A stretch of 64,000 nt of DNA from Trichosphaerium sp. ATCC 40318 (taxonomy: Eukaryota > Protista > Tubulinea): positions 1-64,000 of the forward strand of contig JALMLS010000424.1 in the NCBI GenBank assembly GCA_038496445.1. The letters run 5' to 3'. A program made the position numbers and the translations under genes. Positions 26,876 through 48,625 of this stretch are shown piece by piece. Numbering within the stretch: the stretch's first letter is position 1; every line of letters begins with the position of its first letter. The notes under the pieces were generated by a model. That model did no database searches, was not told the origin of the DNA, and was given only the letters and a program-made list of their open reading frames with translations.

Positions 26876-28013
26876 CAGTGGTAAATTTAAATTGGGGTTT
26901 TTAAGGGATTCCGTCTTAAAATCCTAAGGATTTATAAGCGGAAAATCTCTTCCTTTATTCCTATGGAATCCGGACGGAATTCCCTATGGAATCTGAATGG
27001 AATTCCCTATGGAATCCGGATGGAATTCCTTAAAGAATCTGGACGGAATTCCTTAAGGATTAACAACGGAATTCCCAATGGATTTTTTATGAAATTCCAA
27101 ACAAATTACCTTGAAATACTTTACAATATTTACATCAAGTCTTGTAGCACAAAATTCGTTTTATTTACCAATGATAATTTAGTTACGAAACGCAAATGTT
27201 CCACACGCTATCGTGTACAGGTCAAACTCATCAAATCTTTCCAATCTTTGGCCAAGAATTTTATCGCACCTGGTATCGCAATCATAAACTGCTAATAACG
27301 CATTTGTAGAAGCTAAAATAAGAAAAGAGTAGTTTTTTGATAAATTAAATGGAAATAACCTTCAAAAACAATGTACTTGAGATTAATGCCCTAAATGCGT
27401 GTCCTAGTGGTGTGTAAAGGCCTTTGAAATGCTTTACAAGCCTCAAAACAGATTAGTAAGCGATATAGAAATATTGCTGCTAACAAAAATCACCAAAATA
27501 CTTATCTTGCTTACTTTTTGATTTAACGTCTTTTTGTTGTATCCATTGGTTTTCTACACCAATAAAAGGGTGACGATGTGGTTTACTAAAAAAAAACTTG
27601 GTTAGGTAAGGCTTTGATAGTTGTCGAAATAATGAATAATTTTGAATTTTCACCAAAAATATTTTTCAAAGGAATTCTCACAAAATCCATATGGAATTTC
27701 GTTAAAAATCCCTATGGAATTCCATTAAAAATCCCAAGGGAATTCCCTACAAAATCCATATGGAATTCTGTTAAAAATCCCTTCAATTATTCCCATTGAT
27801 ATGCTGCCAACATTTGCCAATATTGTTGTTTGGGATTTTTTTACAAATCCCAAGGAATTCCTTATTTTAATGGAATATAGCAGAAATCCCATCAAAAATC
27901 CAATCGAAAATTCAGATTGCTTAGGGATTTTTTCCACAATTCTGCTAAAATCCTTAAAAAACACGGAATTTAACAGGATTCCAGAGGAAAATCCCGTTTT
28001 TAATTTACTACTG
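26876..28013. mobile_element. Non-autonomous TIR element family B (1138 bp)
   Basis: Imperfect TIR CAGTGGTAAATT / AATTTACTACTG; GGAATTCC/AAATCC subterminal arrays at both ends; interrupts the MORN gene with flanks ATA|...|ATG. Confidence 0.85.
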
Positions 28014-28624
28014 ATGGTATGACAATGATCAAAAAAAAGAAGAGATTGTTTATTCGAATGGTAAGAAGAATGGTGATTATAAAAGTTGGTACAGAAATGG
28101 TAATAAGAAGATGGAGTGTTGTTATATTGATGGTAAAAAGAATGGAGAATATCAGGTCTAAAATTTTAAGTGGTATATACCACTTTTTTTTTGGTATATA
28201 CCTTTTTTTTAGAGAAAATGGTATTATACGTGGTATATACCACTTACAATATACCATTTTTTAAGGAATTAAGTGAAACAGAAATCAGTTTTATCTTCCT
28301 TTTTGACTTCTCATTTGTTTCAAATAACAACAAATGGCATATACCAAAAAAAAGAGATATATACCAATTTGTTAAAACTTGCATAGGTATCTAAGAAAGC
28401 ATCGTGTTACACTGTCATTTACATTGCAATGGTCATATTTCATGGCCACTGCAATACAAACGGCAAACACATTTTACAGGTTGATAACACCAGTTGTAAG
28501 CCTCAGCGGTAGATGTTGTTACTTGTAAAGATAGTCAGTAAAGGATAAATACAGTCAGTTGGAATGTGTTTTATAAAGTTAAATACCAAATGTGTGGATG
28601 AAATGCTTCATTTGTATACACCAA

Positions 28625-29270
28625 TTTTAAGTACATCAAGTGAAGGTGCTTCTTGTAGGTACATCAAGTGTAGGCACATCAAATGAAAGCACTTCAGTTG
28701 TAGGTACATCAGGTGTAAGCACATCGAGTGAAAGCGCAGTATATCAGGTGTAGGCGCATCGAGTGAAAGCGCTTCAGTTGTAGGTACATCAGGTGTAGGC
28801 GCATCGAGTGAAAGCGCTTCAGTTGTAGGTACATCAGGTGTAAGCACATCGAGTGAAAGCGCAGTATATCAGGTGTAGGCGCATCGAGTGAAAGCGCTTC
28901 AGTTGTAGGTACATCAGGTGTAGGCACATCAAGTGAAAGCGCTTTATATCAGGTGTAAGCGCATCGAGTGAAAGTGCTGTACATCAGGTGAGGCAGTATA
29001 TCAGGTGTAAGTGCATTGAGTGAAAGTGCAGTTTATCGGGTGTAGGTGCATCAAGTAAAAGCGCAGTTTATCGGGTGTAGGTGCATCGAGTGAAAGCGCA
29101 GTTTATCGGGTGTAGGTGCATCGAGTGAAAGCGCAGTTTATCGGGTGTAGGTGCATCGAGTGAAAGCACTTCAGTTGTAGGTACACCAGGTGTAGGCGCA
29201 TCAAGTGAAAGCACTTCAGTTGTAGGTACATCAAATGTAGGCACATCAAGTGAAGGTGCTTTAGTTGTAA
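28625..29270. repeat. Minisatellite of mixed 35- and 45-bp units
   Basis: Repeated AGGTGTAGGCGCATCGAGTGAAAGCGC followed by TTCAGTTGTAGGTACATC or AGTTTATC; no unique spacers. Confidence 0.9.
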
Positions 29271-29669
29271 GAGCGTTTGTAGTTCGGACATCAGTAATTG
29301 GAATATTTGTAGTAAAGAGAGGTAGGCGGTTGAGTTGTTGGTTAAAAACCTTGATTGATCTATGGAAAGGTCAGAACAATCTTCATTTAAAACTTTAATG
29401 TTTGAAATAAATGTACCTTTCTTATTTTTTTCTGGAAATTTTATTGTATAGCGAGGTAAAAGTTCACGTGATATAGAGTACGTACCACTATATATCCTAC
29501 ACCAAGAAGTGCTGGTGATGAGTTGAGTGCTAGTACAAGGAGGTATTTGCCAATATAAGCAACAAAGGTTGTGGAGCTTGTCCATGTTTGGAATCCAGAC
29601 TCAAAGAACTTTACAACAGCGCCAACCTGTACAGAATGTCAAAATGCTTCACATGTTACTTGAGTGTGT

Positions 29670-30405
29670 TGAGGGGTTGAACATTGCTGTAGGGGTTTGG
29701 GCATCGCTAGAAGGTTTTGGGCATCACTGGAGGGTTTGAGCATCACTGAAGGTGTTTGAACATCACTGAAGAGGTCTGAGCATCGCTGGAGGGGTTTGGG
29801 CATTTATGAAAAGGTCTGAGCATCGCTGAAGGGGTATGGACATTGTTGGAAAGGTTTGGGCATCACTGAAGAGGTTTGAGCATTGCTGGAGGAGTCTGGA
29901 CATCGCTGGAGGGGTTTGGACATTGATGAAGAGGTTTGAGCATCGCTGGAGGGGTTTGAGCATTGCTGGAAAGGTCTGGGCATCACTGAAGAGGTCTGAG
30001 CATTGCTGGAGGAGTTTGGACATCGCTGGAGGGGTTTGGACATTGTTGGAAAGGTCTGGGCATCACTGAAGGGGTTTGGACATTGATGAAGAGGTCTGAG
30101 CATCGCTGGAGGGGTTTGAGCATTGCTGGAAAGGTCTGGGCATCACTGAAGAGGTTTGAGCATCACTGAAGAGGTTTGAGCATTGCTGGAAAGGTCTGGG
30201 CATCACTGAAGAGGTTTGAGCATTGCTGGAGGGGTCTAAGCATTGCTGGAAAGGCCTGAGCATCACTGGAGGGGTATGGACATCGCTAGAGGGATCTGGC
30301 ATCATTGGAGGGTCTGGACATCGTTAAAGGGTTCTAAGCATCATTGAAGGGGTTTGAGCATCACTGGAGGTGTCTGGACATTGTTAGAGGATCTGACATC
30401 GCTGA
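29670..30405. repeat. 20-bp minisatellite with ~60-bp higher-order structure
   Basis: Units such as CATCACTGAAGAGGTCTGAG / CATCGCTGGAGGGGTTTGGA / CATTGCTGGAAAGGTCTGGG in register every 20 bp. Confidence 0.92.
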
Positions 30406-30604
30406 AGGATTTACTTCCAGAAATTGGTAAAAGACTTCTACCAGTCTCGGCATACAGTTTTAATGCTGAGAAAATAAAGTAAGATACAAGTGAACAAACA
30501 ACAGTTGAAGGATTCATGAGCGTACCATTTTTACCAACTTTGAAGGCATTTACAAGTTGCTTAGCGGATCCTAGCAAATTTTCCCACTAAAATTAATGTC
30601 AGCA

Positions 30605-31686
30605 CAGGGCTGAAACTCAACAAGGCATTTTTGGACAATGCCTAGGCATTTTCATCCAAATAATGCCTTATTTTTTACAAAAATGCCTAGTTTTTGCCTT
30701 ATTCAAAAAGGCAAATACAGGGCAATGCCTTATTTTTTGCTCCAAAAATGCCTTATATTTGATGAAAAATGCTTGCATCTGGTACACAAGATTGCAATGG
30801 TTTTGCCTGCATATTTTTAAGAATTATGCCCTTCAAATTAGGGCATAACTCATGCATCAATGCCTTATTTTAAAGGCAAAAAAAAAGCATTATCATAGTC
30901 TATAGTGCCTAATAAACCAGGGCATTTTCAGGTAATAACACAACTATTTATTTTATAATACAGTACACATACAATACACAAAACTCCTAAGTCCACATTT
31001 GAAAAAACCTTAAAGAAAATATGAGATGGTGTAGAAAAAAAAAAAAAAAAAACTTACCTTGTAGTGTTAGAATTCCGCGGTCCTGGAAATATCGCGGAGT
31101 TCACTCCTACTACTGTTGTAGGTGAAATAGGGTGCTGCGGTTCGTTTGGCGGTGGTTTCGTCTAATTTCATGAATTACTAAGAGCGATAGGTGCCTGTCT
31201 ATATAAAACGTCAGTAGGTGATGTGAAAAAAAAAGTGTAAAAGTTGTTTGACTGTTACTTACCTTAAACCACTTCCTTAATGTGATCAGTCCCTATGATA
31301 TAGTATAGGCAATGCCTTATATATGAATTAAAATACAAGGCATATAATGCTTAAAAAAATAAAGCATAATAAAGGCATAAAGTACTTGCAATACAGGGCA
31401 TTACTTGATTTTATGCAATGCCAAAAAATGCAATACAGGGCATTACTTGATTTTATGCAATGCCAAAAAATGCAATACAGGGCATTACCTGATTTTATGC
31501 AATGCCAAATAATGCCCAAAAATGCCTGGTTTTAATGCCTTTTTGATGAAGGCATTGCCTTTTTGTAAAAATGCCTTATTTTATTGGGCAATGCCAAATG
31601 CAAATGCCTTGATTTTGCCATCTGATGCCAAATGTTAGGAATATGCATCATTTTTTAAGGCAATGCCTAGCTGAGTTTCAGCCCTG
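30605..31686 (+). mobile_element. Non-autonomous TIR element family A, copy 2 (1082 bp)
   Basis: Same TIRs; CA|...|CA 2-bp TSD; carries an extra ~39-bp tandem duplication near 31390-31470; nested in the giant element. Confidence 0.93.
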
Positions 31687-32888
31687 CACAAAATCAAGAA
31701 TAAATCACGTGTTTTCCAAAAAAAAACTAGTCAGTCAACTTACCTCTGAGATTGATACTTCCAGATTCATCAAGAACCATGACAATATCAAAAACTTGTG
31801 CACACTCATCTGTACAACCATCATGCGAGGCTCTTTTAAAAAAAAAAGGTTAGTTGAAACAAACTGGTTTTTTTTGGTTAAAAACGTACTGATCTTCCAA
31901 AAAAGTATTGTTAGGGAAGGAAGAGCTCTACTCACGTTGATACTGTGCAACTCTTCGCTTGTAGAAGTGCATACGCAATTGTAGTCGCTTCAATCTTGCT
32001 TCAACTCGACCTAGGTTGCTGGTAAGCGCACTTGAACATAAAACAAGAAAACCCAAAACCAGTCTTTGAATTGGTACTAAATGATCTACCTCTTGTGATA
32101 AACTCTAGAAATGGTACTTGTTCCTCTGGTTCGTACTCAAAACCAAAAGGAGCAAATATCTCATCTATCGGCTATTAGCTACGAAAAACTGAATTATGTT
32201 AGCAATGCGCAAAAACTTAGAAAACAGTATGTGATTGGATGATAGCAAAGTAAACATTTTGATGGTTTTAGTTGGGTATGTACCTCATTTTGGGTTTATT
32301 TTGGGTTGGACGCTTTGTAGGCGCTGCAGCAGGTGAGGTACAACTGGCAAGACAACTAGCGTTTGGCTAGTTTTGGTCGCTTGAGAGAATTTAATGTATT
32401 TGCGCTGAAGGGTAAGTTATTTGAGGCTATAAAAATTGTTAGGCGTACCTCAGCATTTTTATTTCTCAACCATAAAAACTCTTGATGTAAATAGCCATTG
32501 GCATCTCATTTAGTTGCCCTATCAGTTCCAAAGCTATTTGTAAGTCAGAAAAAGCCTGGTCAGCAAATTTATTTTATCCCGGCCAAAAACAACAGCTGTA
32601 AGCACAAAATACTCGCAAAAATAAGTTACACAAATGTGTAAAGTGTCAGTGCTGAGGCTTGTTGTACAAGTCAGAAAACGAAGGGTTTGTAGAAATAATT
32701 TGAGTTTTTTAAATGAATGTCAAAGCCGTAGTACGTACCTCACATTCATAATCTAACGCAGGCACCTGCAAAACAATGTTGTTAAAAAGCTGGTAAAATA
32801 CCAGCGTTAAAATTAAACGTGCAAGTTGGGAAAAATAAATTTCCGTGTTTTGTTTTTTTATTTTCGTTGAAGTTTTTTTTTTCTTACC

Positions 32889-33260
32889 TGTTTGAAATGC
32901 ATTAATCTCCAGGATATTCGTTTGGAACCACGGTAATGAGAAAACAGCCATTGTTATAATAGCTGCTGGTATTGAAACTGATATCGTGAGGCCTGAACAA
33001 AATTTGTTAGAAAATGAAGCGTCCCGTGCTGTAAATAAACTAGTGTGTAATCAAACACGTTAAAACACTCGTGAGAAGTATTGTTAAAGCAAAACACAAC
33101 GTTTTAAAGTTCCTTACCTGCAAATAAGCCCAAATACGTATTTGCTGATGACAGTAGCAAACTAAGTATCAAAACCATAACGACTGCCTTTACTACGCAC
33201 TGTCAAGCGTCATTGTTGAAAAAATAAACGTACCTGTAATTTCTGGCAAATCACGCTCAC
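32889..33260 (-). pseudogene. Captured N-terminal fragment of an OPT-family oligopeptide transporter (3 exons)
   Basis: Spliced translation LPEIT/VKAVVMVLILSLLLSSANTYLGLFA/GLTISVSIPAAIITMAVFSLPWFQTNILEINAFQT matches the conserved OPT N-terminus; the remaining TM helices are not seen. Confidence 0.78.
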
Positions 33261-36200
33261 TGTCATCCTCCACAGACACTACCACATGATGATTGTAACT
33301 CCGTGTGCACTGCATTCCTAGTGCATCACAAGTACAGTATCCAAGCGTACAAACGGACTTGACAGGATTAGCGATAGGGATAATATATCGCACAGGTGTA
33401 TGGAGATACAAATGTAATGGTGATCTACAAGTTCCATGCCAGATGCATTCGTCTTTTCCTGAAGAATGATACAACGATAATCATATACAAGGTATCCTCT
33501 TCATTGTCAACCTGTGAGCTAAAACAGCCAATGAGATGAAACAGAAGAGAAAAAAAAAAGAATGTACTCTTTCCATTCTGCTATAAGTTGTCTTTCGAGT
33601 TCTGATGTCCAGTTAACGCCAGACAGCTTGTTAACCGTTGTCTTTAATGTCTCAGCCTGTGTTTTCTTCTCGTTATTGTACTCTTCAAGGTTAAGGTCAT
33701 CGTAGTTATCTATAGGCCCTTCTTCGCCTTCTGGTATCGCTTAGTATTTTGAGCCACACTAATTTTTCGGTGAGTTTTTCCTTTTCCAAGAGTTTCGTTG
33801 TTATAACACATAGAGCTTATACGTACTTCATAACCTCGAGAACATCTCTAAGAGTAAGTGGGTATGCCACACGGGCAATAACTGCCGGGTTTAAGGACAA
33901 GATATCGCGAAAATTATGTACAACCTACGAAAGTTTTAATAAAGTTTTCTAAACAAACATTCGTACGGTTCTAACTGCTTTCTGTAGTCCAATGAGCACT
34001 TTAGATGGCTTCTCAGCAAGTATTCTATTGAACACATACATAAAAGGTAACTACAGAAGAAATAAGGCATAAACAAGAACAACAAAGCACACGTGTTAAG
34101 TTGGTAGCAAAAAAAAAACAGAAAAAAACTCACATGGCACAAAACACCTTCCAACCCAATCGAAAAGTTCTCCACCATTGTTGCAATATGCTCGTTAGTA
34201 TAAGGGTTATTGGTAAGATACGTTTCAGCCAAAATCATATAGTTCGTAGCAATTCGATGAGTGCAATATCTTCGGACATAGCTCTTTTCTTGTGTTAGAT
34301 AGTTTAGAAGCAGGAGAAAAAACGAACCCTGTAGTTGAATAGTTTATCGTTTGCGAATGTCTCAGCGATCTCTCCGCTCATCAGCTGCAGCATCATATTC
34401 AGCATTCTCTTCCCTTTGTAGATCTGCTATGTCTTGAAGCTCAGTAGCTCTAGTGCCTAAACAAGAATTACAAAACATGACTAGACTTCAATATTAACTT
34501 ACCACCTGTAGCATGACCTCTGCTCTTTTTCTTAACAATGAGGCTACTCTAATGGGTACCGTGTTGCTTAAAGAGTCTATGTAACCGGTGTACTAACTCT
34601 ATCAAGGTCACCAAATACCTAGAAGGAAATCAGCGTACGCCAATAGAAAAAAACAAAGAGATCAAATAAACGTACTCTTTAGAGTTTTGGTTCGGCTTGT
34701 AAACACTCATCAAGTGTTGTACAGGCGCAAGTACTGTTTCTACCTTGTAGAATATATTGGCTTGTATGGTTTGTGATATTCTATAACTTTCAGTGTCATT
34801 CATTAGCGTCAAGGCACCGAGCTATGTAAGAGCGTTAAACTTCACTAAAGAAGAAGAAAAAGATCTTTCAAAGTCAAAAAACGATGCCGTTCTGGCGTAG
34901 CACGTGGTTTTTAAAAACCCCCCATACCATTGCATTAAGCGCAGATACAGCTGCTTCAAGTTTTTTGAATCCCGACTCTCTGGTGAGACACATGTATTTA
35001 TGTTTGAAGAAATAATACTAAAAACATTCATTCCCATAGTAGATCTACAAAAAAACATCAGCACGAGTACAACTCTACATTCGTTCTTGTCGCGACACCG
35101 TACCTAATTATTGGTACGCCATATGTAGGTTCAAGCATATCTTTGCCTATTTGAATCAAAGAACGTCAGTAACCAACAAAAGCACTCAAAAAAAGAGTTG
35201 TATTTAGTACCCTTTTTTTTTATGCAACTATCTGCTGCTAAATTAAGCTTATGCTCCGTCCAAAGAATAAATCGATTTAGATATTGGCCACGGTTTAACA
35301 AAAAACAAAAATAGAAAGTACATGTTTCCACATGAGTTATTAACGTCAGTTAGCCGAGGAAGTTAGGTTGTCAAAAGCCGGATAGAGCTAAATCGCTAAA
35401 AGGCAAAGACTAGTTACAATCTACCTACGCTCTCTCACCATCAACAGTGCAAACTCTACATTTGCATTAGCATGAATATTACAATAAATAAAATACCTTT
35501 CATGCAGTTTCTTCTTTAGGCGCCTGACCGGGGTAAGCTACATAAATACGCGTTAATTAACAACGAGCTCACCCAATACGTGAACAAGCGCCTGCTCATC
35601 AAATACAAAATAAAGTGGCTAAAAGAGCTTTTGCGTAACTGAGTTGTACTAAAGCGTACCGTGGTAATACAAGCATTGCCAAGCAATTTATTCATCCGCA
35701 TTGATAGCATAGATTGGTTAATAAACTACATTACATTAGTCATACTCGCCCGCTACAGCACACTGAATTAGTTTTTTTAAAGCAAGCGAAAAGTTATTTT
35801 CAATCGTGTAAGTACTTCGCTTGAACAATTTACACGAGGAAACGTAGTGTACGTACTATATCAGCTGCGATGTTGTTTGTTTAAGCAAACTTACTTAACC
35901 CTTGTTTTCATGCCAATTGAAGCATCGCTGTAGGTAAGTGGTATTTGTACACGAACGCATAAGTGGTAAAATATTTCAACAATCTTTCTCTAACTTGTAT
36001 TAGCTCTTGAATAGCGTAAGAAATAAAGCAAAGTACGGAAATTATTTAGCGGTTTGGCGAGCATTTTCATTTTTAAGCTTTTAGCCTATTTTGCAAAAAT
36101 TCATAATTGTCTCTTGTCTACACCAACGTTATCCACACACACAAGCGATGTAGAACAGAGCATTAAAACCATTTCAGAAATTTGGAAAATGGAAGGTTTT

Positions 36201-36370
36201 TTTTGGCGAACCTCTTGCTTAAAAAGCATCCCAAATGCTTTTATTCGCCCAAATACATAGATGTTTTCTCGGACAAATCTTTTGCAGCTTTTTTTTGAAC
36301 ATGCCGTATTGCCGCGTTTTTGACTGTTTAAAAAGCAATCTCGATAAAAAGGACTTAATCGTTTGTGAAG

Positions 36371-39338
36371 ATGAGTCAGCTACGTGCTGCAGCCAGCAAA
36401 AAGAGGTATGAATTTTTGTTTCAAGGAAACAATTTTGACGTTTTGAATTTTACCAATATTGGTATCACAGCATAGAGCATGTACTAACGTTGTGTATTAG
36501 AAAACGTGTTGCCTCTGCCAAAAAACAACAAAACGTGAAAAAGATAAAAGTGACATGCGTTTTAAAGGACACGGCGAATGAAACTGAACAGGCACAGTTA
36601 CCTTACCTATGCACATATTTATTTATTGCTACAATAGATATCTACAAATTCAACAAGACAGGAAGAGCTAAAAAAGAACATTAAGGACACAATAGCTAAC
36701 TTGCAGGCGTCGCTTGATGAAGTGATTGAAATTGGAGGTGTGATAACGCTTAAGCAACCATGGGCAAAAAAGCTGAGTATAATTCAAAAGTTTTACTCTG
36801 AAAAGTATGTGAAGATGGTAGTTGACCGCTACTTACCACCGAACATTCAAAATCCCACAAAAACAATGTTAAAAAACATTGACGAGGTATATTTTGTGGA
36901 CTTTTTGTAGACTCACCTTTTAATAGGCTAAACGTAAAGGTAAACAATACAATGTCTCTTACACTGCTTTGCTGGAAATGGGATTTGAGGTACAAAGAAG
37001 ACGATTACAAGGTGAGATATGCTTTTAATTATTTACTCTTGTGTTCATTGTTTTTTTAGAAGAACGTAAAAACTTAGAGAGTGCATCTCCTTATGGCACC
37101 TTAAATAAATTTTTTGCCAAGAGAGATTTAGTGGTTGTCTTAAAAATTCTTGGTGGTAAAGAGTTGCCTACTTCAAAGTGTGTACCTAAAGACGCTGACA
37201 AAAACAACAAAAGAAGGGTTGAGCATGTCATTTTTGAAAAAGGAAAACATGCCACTTTGTTAAAGATCCCTTGGGACAAATCCGCACATGATGTTTGGCT
37301 TACCAAGTTTTCTTTGACAAAAAAGTTGTTACAAGCATGTAGAAGCTTTGCTGTTACAGCAAAGAATGAGCTCAAATATAAAGTACGTCAATCATTAAAT
37401 TAGCAATTACTGGGGGTTTTTTCTTAAAGTACTATTTAGTATTGGTCAAAACCAGGCAATCTATGGCATACAAATATTATGAGAACCTACAAAAGTCAGA
37501 ATTATGGCTCTATTCTGTGTGTCACTCCTTTTTCTGGTGCGTTATTCCCATTGAATCTGTTTTAAACGTCTGACTTGAGGTGGTAGAAAAATTTTGTGGT
37601 AATTCTGAAATTAAAGTACCTATTGAGTTGTCGGACACTAGATTGGCACTATTGCAACCTCTAATTGACATTCATAACCACTTGACATCAAATGCGCAAC
37701 AATTTAATGAAGTTGAAGAGGCAGGCATGACCATAGAACTTAAGGTACATTGATTGTTTATGATGTCGATTACTTTTTTTGTAAAGGAGTGGAAAAAAGG
37801 CAAATCTAATTTGCGGATGCATACAGATGGAGATCAAGGACAATTATACTGTGGTAGTGGTATAACTTGTTTTGGATTCATGTTAAAAGATACAAATGGA
37901 GGAGCACAAGCCACAAAAGATATTGTGATTAGAACAAGCAAGTTTTACCATGATAATCTCACTGACTATTAACACCATAACAGAAGGCGGAGACCTTAAG
38001 GTCAGCAGCACAAACTTTGTGTGGGCTTTGACAAATGTGGATGAAGCAGCAAACGTTGCTCAAGGCTTTGGGCCAGGAATAGTAAAACATTCTGTAGCAG
38101 TCAAAGTGCCTACCAAAGTTAGATATTTCTCGTTGATTATCAGACACTTCATCAAAGCAATTCCAAAAATGAGTGCTGATGCCATAAATAAGCAAAAGTT
38201 TTTACTAAGTTTGGCAAGCAAAACTTACAAACCACAAGTTATTACAACATTCATTGATGGTTGATCTAAAAAATGAAAGATTCTTAGCTAATAGACACTT
38301 GCTGTTATCATCGCCACACACGCTACCTGAACCAGGCAATGGCATTACAATCATTCAGCCTGGAACTAAACTGGTTTACAATATTGACGGGTACTGCTTT
38401 TCTTATTGGTTTTATTGTTACATACTAACTCACTACGTAGTTTACATGAAATGGGCTTGATTGCTTCAAATGAATTTACATTTCAAGGCCACGTGACTGT
38501 AGGATTAAAAGTTACATTAAAGAAAAGAGTTCTTGCAAAGGAGTATGTTCAGTTAATTTGTTTGTATCAACAGCTATTGATTTCGAGGTTTAGATACTTT
38601 GATGGAGATTGGGCATTGGTGTACTCTACTGCAACTAAAAAATCACAACAGAGAGTCAATAATTTGATTAAAAGCTCATTGCAAATGCAATATAAGAATG
38701 AAGAGGATCCAAACATTGGTTGTACATTCTTAATAACTCCGTGCAGTATTTTAAAGCAATATGATAGTTCCAATTATGATGATCTTGAATGTACTCATAC
38801 CATAGTAGTTACAGATTCACTTTTTAATATTGTGTTAGGTGGCTGAGAGCTTGGTGTAATCTCTAGATGGTATGTTCACGGTTTAGTCTATTATGGAAAA
38901 CAACCAGTTGTTGTATTCAGAAAAATGAGACGGATTAAACCAGCAAAAGTAATTAGTCAACCATTTGGAGAAGCTGAACCTTCTAAAGAAATATCTTTGC
39001 GTCTCAACTGTAAGTGTTGTACACCATGCCCGCACTTTTTGGACATTTTTACTGATGAAGTTTCTGATTTGGAGCTATCTGATAAAGAGATAATTGAAAC
39101 TGAAACGCAACATTGGAAGCAAGTGTCAATGTCATCAAGTACTAGTATTTTATAGTTTGTGTTTATTAACTATTATTGCAGAGCTTACAAAGATCGACAC
39201 GAAGTTTATCATCACAGACAAACAAAGAGTAAAGCACACAAAGACATATAATCGTGTGTCAGTAACTTTAAAAATGGAATGTTTACTGTTTTAGGTTTAC
39301 ATGAACTTATTGATAAACAAACAGTAATAAATGAATAA
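36371..39338 (+). CDS. Transposon cargo protein: putative 2OG-Fe(II) dioxygenase domain followed by an SRA/YDG-like domain and a Cys-rich tail; may carry lesions
   Basis: HxD in LRMHTDGD (H 37820), GGDL, distal H in VKHSV (38088), R in VRYFSLIIR (38121). Downstream LHEMGL...EYFDGDWALVYS...QQRVNNLIKSS...VVVFRKMRR; CKCCTPC. Apparent in-frame TGA at 38844-38846. Confidence 0.55.
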
Positions 39339-39464
39339 TTATCATTTACACGGCCTCTCAGTATTCATTTTTTCAATAACTCATTGCAGTTTAGGTTTTT
39401 ACAAGTGACTAACTTAATTGATTTGAGGAACATTTACATTTTTTTTGTTTTAGTGGCACGTGTG

Positions 39465-42400
39465 ATGGCTAAGGTGTATTGTTCTGCGTGTAAAAAGTGG
39501 TACAGGTCAAAGTACTATAAATATGAACATTTAAACTCCAAAGCTCATAAACGAGCATTGCTTGGCCTTCATACAAGTATGCGTTCATTATAACTGGCAA
39601 ATAATAAACTAAATCAAATCCAATAGGTAGAGTTTACAGTGTCCAAAATGCTGGTATGAATGGAAAATGTGGAGTAAATGATACCAATGGCGTAGTTGAA
39701 TACAATGAATGTGAGCTTGGTGATGTTAGCATTGATGCCTTGAAATACATGAGCGACGGAGACAACAGCAACGATGGAGGCGACTTTAGCAGTGTGAGCG
39801 ACGACGCAAAGAGTGTGAACAGCGTTGACAGTAATAACATGAGCGATGAAGGCAGTGATGACGTTGACAGCAATAACACAAGTGACGACAGTAGCGACAG
39901 TGATGTAGGTGACTTTAGTAGCATCAGTGATTCAGAAAGTGTAAACAGTGTTGATGATGATGATGGCAATCTCGGCAATGTGCCTTATCTGACAAACTTG
40001 TTACAAAGTTATAGGGGTATGAGCAATGGCGCACAAGACAATGACGTGTGCATGCATTCTGTAGAAATGCCATGTTACTTGGAGGAGAGCAACAGAAGCA
40101 TAGATTATAGTATGTCATTTATTTATTAATAGTTGTCAACTCACTTACAATACTAGCATCTGTTGAAGAGCTTGCAAGGGAGCAAATGCGAAGAGAACAA
40201 GCTCCACCAAAATTTAGTGCAGCAAAGAACTTTGATGATGCTACAGCCATAGACAAATTAGGCTATTTGTTGTTGGCGCTGAAACTGGAACATAAGTTGT
40301 CTGGTGTGTTGTGTGCAAAAATCCTGAACCTGTTGAACACAGCTTTGATCCTTTTTGGCGTGGATAAAAAAGGTGCTTTCAATTGTTGTGCTTTGAATCT
40401 TACGCTAAGTATGTTTTAGATGTTGTGTCAGTTAGTATTCAAACACTGTTCAAAGAGGTAACCGCCAAGGTATGTTATAAATACTAGTAAACGTTTAGGT
40501 AATGAGCATTTAGTTTTTGCCTAAATTTGAACCCAAACAGATTTTTGTGGACAAAAGAAGCAAGTCAGATAAAGTTCTTTCCAGAACTACGGTTCCCTTT
40601 TACCCTCCTTCAAAACACATTAAAAGAGTACTTTATCATGTTCCAGGCAGGGACAGTATTAAAGAGTGTATAAGTTTAGAACCGGCAACAATGCCTACGT
40701 ATTTTGAAGACGGCACTGTGCAGCACGAGAGAGTGTATCAAGGACCAGAAACAGGAACCAACATCAAAAAAATATTTGCAGATGTGCTTGATGAATATGC
40801 AGCTGACAAAGAAAACACCATACTACTTCCAGGTGATTCAACATTATAGGTAGTTGTATCTCACAATACTTAGCTTATATCACCAAAGATGATTTTACTT
40901 ACGACAAAAAAGATAGCCTTGGTCCTCTTTATATGGTGGTTTGGAACTTGCCCAACAGTGCTACTGCTACTGGAAAAATGGTCTTATCTATATTGCCCAA
41001 ATGCTTGCATGAAGAAGATCTTTTAAAACATGTAGTGGAGGATTTCTTAGAGGTCTTTAACGGCATGCGTTGCTACATTCAAAGTGAAAAAAAGGCAAGT
41101 TTTTTCCTTTGTTTTGTTGTTATACAATTGTTTCTCTAATGTGTTTATCTTGTACAGTATTATACGGTGTATTTGAGGTTGACTAAGATTTTGGGAGACA
41201 CACAAGGATCCAACAGGTTGATATGTATGTTAACGTTTTAAACAATGATTTATTAAAGCCTTACTTTGTTTAGCAATGAGAAGTCCAACATCTCACTATC
41301 CTTGTCGAATATGTAGAGTGCCAAAAGCTGCTTTTCAAAAAGTGACTGATGCTCAAGCGTTAATTAAAGCTTATAGAAAAACTCACAACACTCTCACTCT
41401 ATTGCATCAAAACTCGTATAGTGAACACTATAAAGAGTGTTTCAGCATTCATAGACAGGTACACTATTAATAAAATACTCACTGTACTTTTTGACTTATA
41501 AAATGTGTTTAGTCTCCATTTAGCAGCCTATTGTGATACAGGTTTGACTTCTTTTTGGATTCTCCATACTGTCCATTTCACAACATCATATTGGGTATTG
41601 CTAAAAATGTGTTGGCTAAGACGTTGTCAACAATGCAACAGTTATCTTCATTGGAACACTTCAAAAAGACTGTAAATTGTAGAATCAAATATATCAGAAA
41701 ACAAAACACAGGTTTGGGAAAGTGTGTAGTTGGCCACTAGCTTTTTTCCTCTTTTTAAACACAATTTTTAGGATGAAAGCAGTGTGGAACAAGACAGGGT
41801 GCTTGGTGGGTGATAGTTGGGACGGAGCTGATATGAGGACATTTTTAAAAATGTCAGCATTGGTTTTTCGAAATATCTTGCCTGACAACTTTATGGCAAT
41901 GTGGTAGTTTTGTATCCCTTTTTATTTATTCAAATTCTCTAAATAGGAAACACTTGTTGTCATTTGTAGTGTTGAGTCAAAAGGATTACTTGTATGAAAC
42001 TCAAGTCAACAATATTAGCAAAAAATACAAAACTTTGATAGGTAAAATCAAACTTTGCTTTCCAGGTACGTTAAATTCCTTGTGTTTATATGTAATAAAC
42101 CATTGATATGTGTATAGATTGGAACTTGAATACAACTAACTTTCATGTACCTTATCACTATGAATACATGATTAAGAAATTTGGAGTATTTAAACACTTC
42201 AGGTTAAAATGATGTCTAAGTTGACATTTTGCTAAAAGTTTTGCCTTAGTACTTATGCGTGTGAGTCCAAACATGCTACTATAAAGAAATGGAAACAATC
42301 ATCAAAAAATCACAACAAAATCAGGTTTGATTATCACTCATACTTGTCTTTTTTAGTTGATACACTTTAGAGACATAACTAACAAAGAAATACCGTGGCT

Positions 42401-44166
42401 TTTACTATCATATGCTGGCAAATTTGACAAGTTGTGTGCTAAGATTCAGTACAATGTCAATGTGGTTGCTGAGCCAGTTTCTATTGCTTTCACTCGTCCT
42501 TTTTATCAAAGACCAACAACTAAGTGGATGTTAAGTGTGTAATTGTGAAAATGAACTTACAACTTACATCATTTTTTAGGAAACAAACACCGAGTCACAC
42601 ATTTAAGTCACATGGAAAAGTTGGCACTTGAAGCTACTTTTCTTTTAGCTTCTGAACAACTTTTATCCGGATTGTTTGGCCTTTATAACTCGATCACTGC
42701 ATCAGACATGTCTATCAAACTGTCAATGTCATCTGAAACTCTTTTTAAGTCATGGAGAACTGCTAAAAATGAGTCTAAACAAGATTGCATTTATGTTAAA
42801 ACACAAGCAATTTATCAAAGCATGACAAATGCTAATGCAGTGTTTATATTTGGCACAGGGCTGAAACTCAGCTAGGCATTGCCTTAAAAAATGATGCATA
42901 TTCCTAACATTTGGCATTAGATGGCAAAATCAAGGCATTTGCATTTGGCAATGCCCAATAAAATAAGGCATTTTTACAAAAAGGCAATGCCTTCATCAAA
43001 AAGGCATTAATACCAGGCATTTTTGGGCATCTTTTGGCATTGCATAAAATCAGGTAATGCCTTGTATTGCATTTTTTGGCATTGCATAAAATCAAGTAAT
43101 GCCCTGTATTGCAAGTACTTTATGCCTTTATTATGCCTTATTTTTTTAAGCAATATATGCCTTGTATTTTAATTCATATATAAGGCATTGCCTATACTAT
43201 ATCATAGGACTGATCACATTAAGGAAGTGGTTTAAGGTAAGTAACAGTCAAACAACTTTTACGCTTTTTTTTTCACATCACCTACTGACGTTTTATATAG
43301 ATAGGCATCTAGCGCTCTTAGTAATTCATGAAATTAGACGAAACCACCCCCAAACGAACCGCAGCACCCTATTTCACCTACAACAGTAGTAGGAGTGAAC
43401 TCCGCGATATTTCCAGGACCGCGGAATTCTAACACTACAAGGTAAGTTTTTTTTTTTTTTTTTCTACACCATCTCATATTTTCTTTAAGGTTTTTTCAAA
43501 TGTGGACTTAGGAGTTTTGTGTATTGTATGTGTACTGTATTATAAAATAAATAGTTGTGTTATTACCTGAAAATGCCCTGGTTTATTAGGCACTGTAGAT
43601 TATGACAATGCTTTCTTTTTGCCTTCAAAATAAGGCATTGATGCATGAGTTATGCCCTAATTTGAAGGCATAATTTCTTAAAATATGCAGGCAAAACCAT
43701 TGCAATCTTGTGTACCAGATGCAAGCATTTTTCATCAAATATAAGGCATTTTTGGAGCAAAAAATAAGGCATTGCCCTGTATTTGCCTTTTTGAATGAGG
43801 CAAAAACTAGGCATTTTTGTAAAAAATAAGGCATTATTTGATGAAAATGCCTAGGCATTGTCCAAAAATGCCTTGTTGAGTTTCAGCCCTGCATGTACGT
43901 CAAAGAGAAACCAAAACTAAACAAAATAATTTCATTGTAGGTACTACACAATTAAAGACCTTGACACCCCTTATGACGCTGCCAGTGAGTTGTTAATGTA
44001 AGTTCTGGTCCAATTTTTTGGTTTGTCTGATAACAATAGGGTTAAATTGGAGCATAAAATAGCATGTATACCTCTGAAATGTGTCTACAAATTGGCACAA
44101 CTTTACAATACTCCAGATGACCAAGTGTTATTGATCAATTATTATCATTATGCCATACCGGCTTGA
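39465..44166 (+). CDS. DDE transposase of the CMC (CACTA/Mirage)/Plavaka type, spliced, disrupted by family A copy 3
   Basis: N-terminal CSAC...H...H zinc finger, acidic tract, LALKLEHKLSG, KDDFTYD...LGPLYMVVWNLP, ILGDTQ, YPCRIC, CPFHNIILGIAKN, NFHVPYHY...KFGVFKHFSTYACESKH. Confidence 0.85.
42856..43891 (-). mobile_element. Non-autonomous TIR element family A, copy 3 (1036 bp, inverted)
   Basis: Same TIRs, CA|...|CA TSD; removal restores TTT GGC AT followed by a GTACGT splice donor in the transposase gene. Confidence 0.93.
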
Positions 44167-44213
44167 AATACCAGCAAAATTGGGTCAATAATTTTAGTTA
44201 ACACAAAACACAA

Positions 44214-46565
44214 ATGTTGTCAGAACCTGTACCTCCGCCTGCTAAAAAATTAAAAGATGAGGAAGTATTGAAGTGTTTACTGTACCTTTAACAATTATTT
44301 TTTACTCTTGCTGTATTTAACTTTTTATTAGTAGTATAAACTTACAATTGAATACTTTAAACGGCTTATGTACTTCAAATGAACAAGCTATAACAAAAAT
44401 TGCAAACACTCAACAAGTTTTAAACGCTCCCACAATTGAAGAGAAAGATATTCCCACGCCTGACCATGTGCGCTGATGCCAAACCTGCAATATTACATTT
44501 GTAACATAATTTATTTTTTTAGAGCGGATTGTCAACAATAATTGTACGGACACTGATAGAAGAAGGCGCGAGAACACACAAACAAAAAGTAGCAACTTTT
44601 ACGAAATTAAAAAAAGAAGAAAAGTACAAATCATATGACTTCACCTCAAGCAACAAAAAGCTTATACGATGCTACACAACTGCTTTTAGAAATTTAAAAG
44701 GTTATATCACAAAGTATGTGCGGACAATAAAAGAAACAGACGCAAGCATAAGCTCAGAAGACGCTTGTACGGCATATGTGTTTTAGGGGTTTTTTACATT
44801 AACATTTTATTTTTTCAGGGGCTATAATTCTTAAAGCTCTTCAACACAATGATTTCTGTATTGCCATTTCCTTTGTAAGTACTCCGAAAACAGAGGAGAT
44901 GTTTAAAACAATGGTACGAGAGACATAAAGGCTTTTTTTGTTGATTCACAATATTAATTGTTTTTGGTCTCAACATAACAGTAATTTACAGTTCGCCAAA
45001 ATATGGAAGCTCTCTCCTCAAAAAGCATCGAAACACTACAAACAAGCACAAGTTTCTGGACATAGACGTTTTGTGGCTAACAATTATAAACACTTGTACG
45101 ATTTTCCTTTTTTTTGCTTATTTGGTGTTGACTTGACTTGTAGAACAACATTTGTGCAAGATAAAGCAAAAGGATTGCATTTAAAAACACAAATTGAAGC
45201 ACTTTCTGTAACTATGGGGCTGTCACAACCAAACACAGTAAATATGGAAAACAACAATACACCTAGCATGTTTCCTGTCGACGGCATTGCTGGTAATCGT
45301 TCCAATGATACGTTTTCTTTTGGAATAGATAGAAGTACTTTTGATAATGTTTTTCCTGGTGGCTTTTCTTCAAACTCAATGCTTACTTCTTTCAGAAATG
45401 TGGCTTCTATTCCAGGTACATGTTATGTCTGCCCATTAGTATTGTTTTTAACTCTCTTTTTAGCTGTTTCTCCTAATAGAAGTGGTATTGTTGTGCCCAA
45501 CAATTCCAATGACTTAATTTCAGACAGTTTTTTTGGTTCTGATTTAATTGATGACAGCGACTCACATGGTGGTACTACAATTTTTAAGTCTGGTACAACA
45601 ATTGCTCCTACGATTGACCAACACAATACACTTGCCACTAGCCGACATGCTGTTGCTACTTTTAGCGAAATAGTAGGTGATAACTTTAATACAAGTGTCG
45701 ATTTAGCCTCTGCAAATGGCTCTATTGGTTCTAGCGTATCATCTGTCGTTACTCATGGTATTTCTGGCACTCAAGTAATTGAGTCAGTTGTCACAAGTAA
45801 GAGTTACTTATGCTATGTTTGGTTATTCATTATTTTGTAATAGCAACACAGCAACTTGCATTGGACGCACAGCTTTCATTTCAAGGTCAAATATATTCAT
45901 TTGTTGATTTTGTTTGGCTTTATAGCAATGATGGAACTCCAAATGCAAAGCAATTGATTTCTTATATGGCTTTGTTAAAACAAACACTCTGTACTCAAGG
46001 TATGATACATTAAAAAAAAAATAATATTAAACCACAACAGCAGTAAACTTTGAAAGCATCATAATTGGTTTGGAAAAAGATTTAGAACACACTCCCGTTT
46101 TGGTATGTAAATAAACACCACAAATTCTTATTATTGTATTGAAGGACAAGAGCAACAGCAGTAATTGTGTTTTTGTTTTGGTGCCATTTGTTTTTCAAGG
46201 TCCAAATCCTGCCGTTGTTACTTTGGCGACTATCCAAGATGACTACACTATAAAATGTACCTGCTTTTTTTTTTTTCACATCTTAATAACTATGTTGTAA
46301 GGTTGGTTATCAATTGTTGGAGTTGCCAATGACCATTGCATCTTTGTACGTGATTTTACATTTATTTTTCAAAATTGGCATTCTTGTAGGTCCAAAAGTA
46401 GCTCCAGACAACATATCTGGTTTTGTGAAATCTGTTGCTCATTATAAAAAAATAGTTATTTGGATCAAAATCTTCATTGCAAGATAATAAAGGGAAAGCG
46501 GTGAAGTATTAACTTTACGAGCTAATGCAGAAATGGTAGCACGATATGCCTTGAAGCTTCTTTAA
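44214..46565 (+). CDS. Hypothetical transposon-encoded protein (NLS-like start, Ser/Thr-rich middle), spliced; end uncertain
   Basis: MLSEPVPPPAKKLKDEE start 48 bp after the transposase stop; long ORFs 44529-44786 and 44938-45840 with embedded introns. Confidence 0.55.
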
Positions 46566-48625
46566 AATCCAAAACAAAGGTGCTGTGTTTATGATAACTA
46601 GATATTAATATGTTTGTAGAAAAAGAAAAGAACAGAGAATTTATATAACAATTTTGGAAGCAACGCAAAGCAGCTGTTGAGCCTTTCAAGATTGTGTTCA
46701 TTGTTTGGAGAATTAATTTACATTGAAAAACAAGACAAGTTGTCCACTCACTTTTTGTCGTGTATGTCCAATCTTTGTATGTTTTGTGCTAATGTAACAA
46801 TGTAGTTAACTCAACTGTGCAAACACACAGCATGAGCACTATTGTAGACCAGGCTTCAAAAGGATTTATTACGTTTTTTGAATAATGTAATTACATATCC
46901 AATAAATAGAATGAATTGTAAAAATAGTTTTTTTACCTATTTATATAACGGACTGCTGTCAACGATAATAAAAAAAAAAGTATATACCATTAGCAAAGTG
47001 GTATAAAATGCAAGTTACAAGTGGTATATACCAAAAAAAAAATGGTATATAGGAATGGTATATTAGGTTTTTTCAAGTGAAAAAAAATGGTATAAATTCC
47101 GTGTTTATACCACTTTTTCCTGGCATATTAATGGTATATTTTACAAGTATACCAACTTTTTTTGGTATAATATACCATTTTTTTTGGTATATAAGCTGGT
47201 TTTTGGTATAAATGTTGAAAAGTGGTATAAAAAGAAGGTATATTTGATTATAAAATAGTATGGCAAAAAAAATATGGTATATGAGATGATAATAGTTGGT
47301 ACATGAGTGGTAATTTATGGTCAAGTGGTTTGTTTAAAAATGATAAGTATGAAGGAACTATAAAACGATTTTATGAGTGTGGGTTACTACAAGAGTTTAG
47401 TTTTTATACAGAAGGTTTTAGAAAACATATAGTATATTGGCATAAAGACGGAACAAAGATGTAGATCGACACATACCCAGCTATTAGTGTTCATTAAATA
47501 AGTTGCAACTTCCACCAGTTAAGTGAAAATAGTAGATACAGAAAGTACTTGCAAATGTTATTGCTAGAATTGTACTACATGGTTAAGAACAAGTGCAATA
47601 AATGCAACAGATTGACTTGTGAAAGATGTCGACTCATACATTAATCGAAAATTTCTTTATCTTCTTTTTTCACAACGTGCCAGCAACACAGTTCATGCCT
47701 GTTCACAGACTAATCAATACCAAAATGATTTAAACAAACTGCCAGAATCATACTACAACGTGTGGGCATGTGGTTTATCTTTCAGCGTGTTGTCTGACAA
47801 AATATTGTCAATGCTCAATCACATATCTGTGTTTCTGATACAGGTTTATGTGAGACGCTGCCATTCAGTATAAGATGTAGGCAAGCGTACAAGTATAGCT
47901 CATACGTCAACCACGCACTTCGTGCGTTTTTTTATTTCGGCACCTAGTCCCTACTTTAACATTTCATATTAGGAAGCCAAGCCAACAATAGTAGAATACA
48001 GGTGCATGACGTTGGAGGCGATAGAAACGGAACTTGATAATGCTCCTAATAAGCTCATGTTAAAGCACGTGACGCCTTTAAAAACCTCTTTTGCGAAGTG
48101 CTCTACAGTGGTGTCATAACTTTTACTACCGTGAATTTCGTGACACATGACCAGTAATCCAAAGGATTTTACCTGAGATTTGGACATCTGCTACGAAACT
48201 TAAGGACACTAGTGAAGCATTAGCAGTGGCGTACAAGTATCATAATTGCTTGATAAGGTATTTCAATCAAAAGACAAAGCAGCTTTTTAAGTCAGCTTAA
48301 TTATCCGTACCAGTTCCTTTGAGACTACCGTGCAAGACCTACAATCGAATCCGTCATTCAAAAACTTGTATATTGACGCTGTCTGATGTCAACGAAACGA
48401 AGGAATCAAAAAGGAACTTTTTTTAAAGTCATTTGTGTTTGATTACAGTAACGTATTTCATACACTCTGAAAAGACGTTTATGAGAAGAAAAAAAAGTTC
48501 ATGTGTTTTACCTACAGTTTTCAATGTCAAGTCAACGTCAAAATACACGATCGAAGCAACAAAGCCGCTGAGCGTTTATTTTTCATATTATGGAATACTG
48601 TTATTAGTTTAATGATCTACAAACA

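Follow-up and report, generated by a model that had tools for sequence, protein, structure and literature searches.

The window, the whole stretch of 64,000 nt that was analysed, comes from the amoeba Trichosphaerium sp. ATCC 40318 (contig JALMLS010000424.1, positions 1 to 64,000, forward strand) and consists of AT-rich, eukaryotic DNA with a G+C content of about 36%. It contains a 19-kb CMC/Plavaka-like cut-and-paste transposon with two genes, one encoding the transposase and one, directly upstream of it, an accessory protein, the centre of which is tentatively read here as the core of a strongly diverged Fe(II)/2-oxoglutarate (2OG) dioxygenase. The element and its genes are:

28153-47288, no strand: DNA transposon; the host open reading frame (ORF) is restored on its deletion and it has subterminal repeats
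36371 (ATG) to 39153-39155 (TAG), forward strand: accessory (non-transposase) gene of about 12 exons, made up of stop-free pieces in three frames joined by GT-AG introns
39465-42540, forward strand: transposase gene, intron-split, with a C2H2 finger, an acidic tract and three motifs recognised by eye

Upon deletion of 28153-47288 together with one AT, the ORF of a host gene with MORN repeats is uninterrupted again, reading ...IDGKKNGEYNSWYMSGNLW... around the junction. The insertion measures 19,136 bp and is flanked by a target-site duplication of 2 bp (AT), within the 2-3 bp found with CMC/Plavaka cut-and-paste insertions. Its termini are CAGGTC... on the left and ...GAGATG on the right (CATCTC... 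as reverse complement), sharing just CA..TG with the CACTA..TAGTG or PlavakaB CATCA..TGATG ends, and arrays of the subterminal repeat GGTATATACC are present at both ends of the element (28160-28370 and 46980-47290). Because the accessory gene and the transposase both lie inside an insertion whose removal, with one AT, restores the host ORF, the claim of the initial annotation that the gene is transposon-encoded is supported, and both genes are carried by a genuine cut-and-paste transposon. The host gene that was split (about 27990-28152 and 47289-47400) encodes MORN-type repeats, ...YSNGKKNGDYKSWYRNGNKK...GEY/NSWYMSGNLW.... Just outside the left end, at 27682-27782, 4.4 copies of a 23-nt tandem repeat AAAATCCCTATGGAATTCCGTTA with palindromic GGAATTCC cores were seen.

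The model of the accessory gene was built from splice logic alone, with four ambiguous junctions. The working model consists of the following parts:

36371-36405, 36501-36558, 36638-36886, 36927-37011, 37060-37382 and 37580-37744, forward strand: exons 1 to 6
37787-37859, 37933-38259, 38288-38390, 38441-38542 and 38594 to about 38838, forward strand: exons 7 to 11
38867 or 38887 to 39155, forward strand: final exon
36406-36500 (95 nt), 36887-36926 (40 nt), 37012-37059 (48 nt) and 37745-37786 (42 nt): clear introns
38391-38440 (50 nt) and 38543-38593 (51 nt, in frame, GTATGT..TTTAG, splitting the exons that had been called SRA-like): clear introns
37860-37932, forward strand: best candidate intron (73 nt, GTATAA..GATTAG), from an enumeration of all frame-preserving GT-AG pairs
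38844-38846, forward strand: in-frame TGA, inside a possible 48-nt GT-AG intron 38839-38886 (GTGGCT..GGTTTAG) or 33- to 45-nt alternatives, otherwise a nonsense mutation
36371-36558, forward strand: N-terminal exons with the basic, nuclear localisation signal-like tract MSQLRAAASKKRKRVASAKKQQNVKKIKV (KKRKR...KKIK) in the spliced translation

The gene is thus split by about 11 short GT-AG introns, which measure 40-95 nt apart from one of 197 nt or, in its place, two of 47 and 39 nt, and with these canonical introns only the spliced ORF is fully open and encodes about 650-700 residues. The G+C content is 0.364 in exons and 0.327 in introns, and reaches 0.433 at the first codon position. A first automatic splice model was dropped, as it removed coding sequence. 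The gene lies on the same strand as the transposase and ends 310 nt before its ATG at 39465, in agreement with the initial annotation, which had placed it just upstream. Taken together, 36371-39155 very probably represents a genuine accessory gene of the transposon. The basic tract at its N-terminus looks like a nuclear localisation signal, which suggests a nuclear protein. Most introns of the gene are 40-51 nt long with TAG as the usual 3' end, and TACTAAC stands 11-12 nt before two acceptors; as a strict branch site this heptamer was rejected, since 13 occurrences were seen in the window and about 14 are expected.

Three sites in this gene could be taken as lesions. At the first, intron 37860-37932 joins the exon with the candidate HxD motif (frame 2) to the exon with GGDL, the distal His and Arg (frame 0), placing FTMIISLT after HxD; a 1-nt frameshift in the T-run 37943-37946 would serve instead. 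At the second, the frame change located near 38255-38290 by the initial annotation is real, the frame-0 piece ending at the TGA 38262-38264; a tiny intron or a frameshift, as proposed there, is not needed, since introns 38209-38287 (79 nt) and 38260-38335 (76 nt) fit as well as the 28-nt intron 38260-38287. The third is the TGA at 38844-38846, which had been correctly reported as in frame and which the 48-nt intron bridges. Neither the 28-nt intron (38260-38287) nor one of 33 nt (38834-38866), although both are possible, is required, introns of 48-79 nt bridging the same junctions.

If all three, the TGA 38844 as well as the changes of frame at about 37943 and 38260, were indeed lesions, the element would be a decaying, non-functional copy and its frame would say little about a working protein. 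The frame beyond the TGA, which is open for a further 102 codons, points in this direction, as do the readability of two junctions as 1-nt frameshifts and the two MITE-like (miniature inverted-repeat transposable element-like) insertions within the element. However, all three sites can be bridged by canonical GT-AG introns of 48-79 nt, in the size range of the other introns of the gene, and the ends of the element are intact with their 2-bp duplication. Decay is therefore considered unlikely. Because each awkward junction can be spliced in this way, the gene copy may be intact.

The initial annotation had read a double-stranded beta-helix (DSBH) dioxygenase in the middle of the gene. All strings quoted there, including those of the C-terminal half listed further below, were found on the forward strand. 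Those of the central part are:

37817-37834, forward strand: MHTDGD, candidate metal-binding motif HxD, which closes a stretch of beta-type hydrophobic periodicity
37862-37885, forward strand: ITCFGFML
37933-38259, forward strand: central exon, the largest, with FTMIISLT, GGDL, VKHSV and VRYFSLIIR
37986-37997, forward strand: GGDL
38082-38096, forward strand: VKHSV, candidate distal His (H at 38088-38090)
38118-38144, forward strand: VRYFSLIIR, candidate 2OG-binding Arg

The order and the spacing of this pattern hold. In the spliced model, 63 residues separate the HxD motif (HTD, 37820-37828) from the distal His, where about 50-80 are expected, and the Arg of VRYFS follows 11 residues past this His, the 2OG-binding position being expected about 10-17 residues past it. 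Both spacings are typical of DSBH enzymes such as AlkB, ALKBH and TET. Hydrophobic periodicity of the beta type was observed at the HxD, GGDL and VKHSV segments. One element of the earlier pattern is lost: ITCFGFML, taken for a hydrophobic strand, lies inside the best candidate intron 37860-37932 and is probably not protein in that model.

On these grounds the beta-rich segment in the centre, about 110 residues long (NLRMHTDGD ... GGDLKVSS ... IVKHSVAVKV ... RYFS), would form the core of a highly divergent Fe(II)/2OG dioxygenase, which is the most likely single reading of the gene and is put forward tentatively. Counted in its favour are the transposon context with its exact ends, the co-orientation with the transposase at 310 nt, the open spliced frame, the G+C contrast between exons and introns and the codon-position bias. 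The strict chain H.D...H...R..S was counted on the same side, since just 6.5% of shuffles that preserve the composition of the spliced protein contain it.

A number of results weigh against it. The generic chain H.[DE]...H...R..[ST] occurs in 25% of the same shuffles, and as it is found in 6.5-25% of shuffles the triad is weak evidence; what was observed is real, yet goes beyond chance only in part. The motif was moreover found by eye, and a selection effect therefore applies. The segment RYFSLIIRHFIKAI, which contains the 'R..S' motif and where the 2OG-binding strand is expected, has the clean periodicity of an amphipathic helix and not of a strand, and it is helical as well in a low-confidence AlphaFold2 model (predicted local distance difference test, pLDDT, 44). 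No dioxygenase family (2OG-FeII_Oxy, 2OG-FeII_Oxy_2, Tet_JBP, JmjC and others) was matched in Pfam by either half of the intron-split core, even at E<=10. With the 111 residues of the central exon as query, a phmmer search yielded a single, spurious match among 1.84 billion representative proteins, and phmmer against the PDB with five pieces gave E values of about 1 at best. ESM Atlas recognition of three exons was 1085-1552 with no family lead, a range to be set beside the 2300 reached by 91% of proteins of known families. The comparisons with AlkB described below fall on this side too.

Relatives were sought in other collections as well. Word-index protein searches with three exons gave no relative, and none of the accessory gene was found in contig collections of metagenomes (two scans), viruses (two) and genomes (one). 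With tblastn of all pieces against the window, no second copy of the gene was found. Pfam was run on about 29 stop-free pieces of the element, covering its two strands, and recognised only a weak C2H2 finger at the N-terminus of the transposase. AlphaFold2 run without an alignment on the two longest stop-free pieces yielded pLDDT values of 44 (the 111-residue exon alone) and 38 (38442-38843), too low to judge a fold. Three candidate matches were rejected: P0001, the sole phmmer match of 37929-38261, is a bacterial tandem-repeat protein with a score summed over 8 repeats; viral jelly-roll coat proteins, the top PDB matches of the central exon, are not significant at E of about 1; and a PAP_fibrillin row in the ESM Atlas at 0.85 lies under the lead threshold. 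The accessory protein is without detectable sequence relative in public protein space.

Membership of the TET/JBP family finds no sign in these data, Tet_JBP being unmatched in Pfam and no member turning up by phmmer among the 1.84 billion proteins. AlkB was tested on the unsplit core, which was spliced in a script. A hidden Markov model built from 13 bacterial sequences (E. coli AlkB and 12 plasmid-borne homologues, 33-62% identity) scored the core at -2.0 bits, and 31% of shuffles score as high. Smith-Waterman alignment of the spliced core with E. coli AlkB gave the shuffle mean (z -0.1), and hhalign a probability of 0.2%, its score again coinciding with the shuffle mean. The best local alignments place HTD on H131-x-D133 of AlkB, as any HxD would. 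By eye the protein resembles the AlkB family (E. coli AlkB, ALKBH1-8, FTO) in the succession of a hydrophobic strand, G, L.hH.D.D, the 'IISL' strand, a GG/GD strand, His and an Arg-rich strand. Unlike in AlkB, the Arg pair is R-x6-R and not R-x5-R, the segment around it looks helical, and no statistical similarity accompanies the resemblance. The label 'AlkB-like' is thus not supported by comparison of the sequences.

The orphan status of the protein also fits a different explanation, a non-enzymatic accessory protein of transposition. The product would then be a nuclear DNA-binding factor like TnpA, recognising the subterminal GGTATATACC repeats and helping synapsis of the ends, with a coincidental HxD...H...R chain. 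In CACTA elements of the En/Spm type, a second element-encoded protein, TnpA, binds the arrays of subterminal repeats. As the present transposon has such repeats, in dense arrays at both ends as in CACTA elements, a TnpA-like cofactor is a serious rival; the basic N-terminus of the accessory protein agrees with it, as do the failure of every method used to detect an enzyme family and a motif chain that is not rare by chance. Against this role, no DNA-binding domain was detected by Pfam either, no conservation of TnpA-like proteins is known outside plants, and the beta-rich central segment with its canonical triad spacing would be left unexplained. By analogy with En/Spm such a cofactor is possible, and it is rated somewhat below the dioxygenase.

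In its C-terminal half the protein had been proposed to resemble the SRA/YDG domain, on the basis of these stretches:

38441-38838, forward strand: 'SRA-like' exons (LHEMGL, YFDGDWALVYST, QQRVNNLIKSS)
38442-38459, forward strand: LHEMGL
38595-38630, forward strand: YFDGDWALVYST
38646-38678, forward strand: QQRVNNLIKSS
38913-38933, forward strand: VFRKMRR

Canonical introns can join these exons to those of the putative dioxygenase, so a single gene is plausible and a separate one is not required. None of the searches lent statistical support to the resemblance itself. In Pfam at E<=10, where only chance matches (Attractin, Ig_CD22) appeared, neither SAD_SRA nor any other PUA-like family was matched; phmmer against the PDB gave no match to a solved SRA structure, and the ESM Atlas no lead. 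The region corresponding to YxDDxDxG...YTGxGG and N.AL reads YFDGDWALVYSTATKKSQQRVNNLIKSS, out of register and with no GG loop: at the position of the diagnostic YTGxGG loop stands VYSTATKK, and the VRV.R strand is not in register. The Q...N.L motif follows after 7 residues; in UHRF1 it follows after about 20 residues. WYVHGL, part of the stretch that was quoted, lies inside a candidate intron and may be intronic. Compared with the SRA/YDG domains of UHRF1, SUVH and bacterial SRA-HNH proteins, the likeness is loose (Y.D.D, Q...N.L and a C-terminal hydrophobic-basic strand), whereas the region lacks a profile match and the YTGxGG loop, has its motifs at another spacing and is broken by at least two introns. 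The SRA/YDG call is unsupported, and the C-terminal half appears to be an unclassified domain rather than a demonstrated SRA.

These data also bear on the full model of the initial annotation, in which one protein fuses the 2OG-Fe(II) dioxygenase to an SRA/YDG reader of methyl-cytosine and both reads and erases methylation of the element's DNA. Splicing can unite the exons in one ORF, the SRA motifs are loosely echoed by eye, and fungal transposons do carry TET/JBP enzymes (PMC12730594). Nevertheless, searches of Pfam, the PDB and the ESM Atlas yielded no match or lead to an SRA or PUA-like family, the loop and the VRV.R strand are out of register and some of the quoted stretch may belong to an intron; the AlphaFold2 model of the fragment, at pLDDT 38, is too low to inform. 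For the AlkB-SRA fusions of fungi named in the initial annotation, no direct support was found. Such a reader-eraser fusion is regarded as highly improbable.

The transposase gene starts at the ATG 39465. It opens with a C2H2 zinc finger of the U1/JAZ-like type, MAKVYCSACKKWYRSKYYKYEHLNSKAHKRAL, which Pfam recognises as zf-C2H2_2 (E=0.001); an acidic tract of 170 residues rich in Ser, Asp and Asn comes next (39608-40126). Three motifs were recognised by eye further downstream: DDF..WNLPN (40939-40956), CRICRV (41303-41320) and HNIILGIAKN (H..LG..K, 41579-41608). The order of these motifs fits a DDE transposase of the CACTA/Plavaka type. On the short pieces of this gene no match to the Pfam transposase models (Transposase_21, Plavaka profiles) was obtained, so the assignment to CMC/Plavaka is by motif only.

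Two smaller insertions bracket the accessory and transposase genes within the transposon:

30605-31686, no strand: MITE-like element of 1.08 kb with a terminal inverted repeat (TIR) of 25 nt, CAGGGCTGAAACTC..., flanked by CA/CA
42856-43891, no strand: second MITE-like copy, inverted, about 97% identical, flanked by CA/CA

The start of their TIR resembles the left terminus of the large element, CAGGTCTAAAA, and the same transposase family may therefore mobilise them. Tandem arrays were seen in the left arm, at 28634-29269 with units of 35, 45 and 125 nt containing CATCGAGTGAAAGCGC, and at 29671-30381 with about 35 copies of the 20-nt unit GAGGGGTTTGAGCATCGCTG; that several of their frames lack stops is due only to the repetitive sequence. 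In the right arm, 44929-45837 on the forward strand is a stop-free stretch of 303 codons, rich in Ser, Thr and Asn and without a Pfam match, which could be a third cargo gene or due to chance.

What the analysis adds to the initial annotation is the exact proof of insertion, a splice model free of lesions, the probable removal of ITCFGFML as intron and the negative AlkB test on the unsplit core. If the central segment is a dioxygenase, its presence in the transposon would parallel that of TET/JBP enzymes in fungal transposons; the enzyme would oxidise a base modification on the element's own DNA or RNA, and this oxidation could blunt silencing by the host. In that case it would represent a new, sequence-orphan branch of nucleic-acid oxygenases, methylation-type silencing would be implied in the amoeba, and carriage of a base-modification eraser would be a convergent strategy of transposons in Amoebozoa and fungi. 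A more specific version, in which an amoebozoan CMC/Plavaka-like family independently acquired a divergent AlkB/TET-like DSBH nucleic-acid dioxygenase as anti-silencing cargo, joined to a novel C-terminal nucleic-acid-binding domain, is doubtful; if true, it would add an AlkB/TET-like DSBH branch invisible to sequence profiles and the first such case outside fungi. Should the protein not be a dioxygenase, it would still be an orphan among accessory proteins, belonging to a large transposon family that seems to have been active recently, and could represent a transposition cofactor of a new kind.

Among known systems, En/Spm of maize (CACTA) is comparable in that a CMC-type transposon with short subterminal repeat arrays encodes a second protein, TnpA; in contrast with TnpA, to which it has no sequence similarity, the accessory protein is encoded upstream of the transposase by an apparently separate gene. 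With Plavaka the amoeba element shares the short target-site duplication (2 bp here, 2-3 bp in Plavaka), but not the termini, which are CAGGTC/CATCTC here and CATCA..TGATG or TGT..ACA in Plavaka.

The closest parallel to the dioxygenase reading is found in fungi, where TET/JBP dioxygenases are found in many lineages of DNA transposons, which probably evade methylation-based silencing in this way (Kojima 2025, PMC12730594). The carriers include Kyakuja/Dileera/Zisupton, Plavaka, EnSpm, ESTA, hAT, Harbinger, IS3EU and Helitron elements (PMC12730594). Some of these proteins are recognisable only by HHpred at E of about 1 together with AlphaFold models (PMC12730594), and since they are barely seen by sequence, the failure of sequence methods does not exclude a dioxygenase in the amoeba element. 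Compared by sequence alone, the amoeba gene differs from the fungal ones in its amoebozoan host and in having neither a Tet_JBP match in Pfam nor a relative. It agrees with them in being an extra gene beside the transposase of a large CMC/Plavaka-like cut-and-paste element, and in the HxD...H motif chain of its product.

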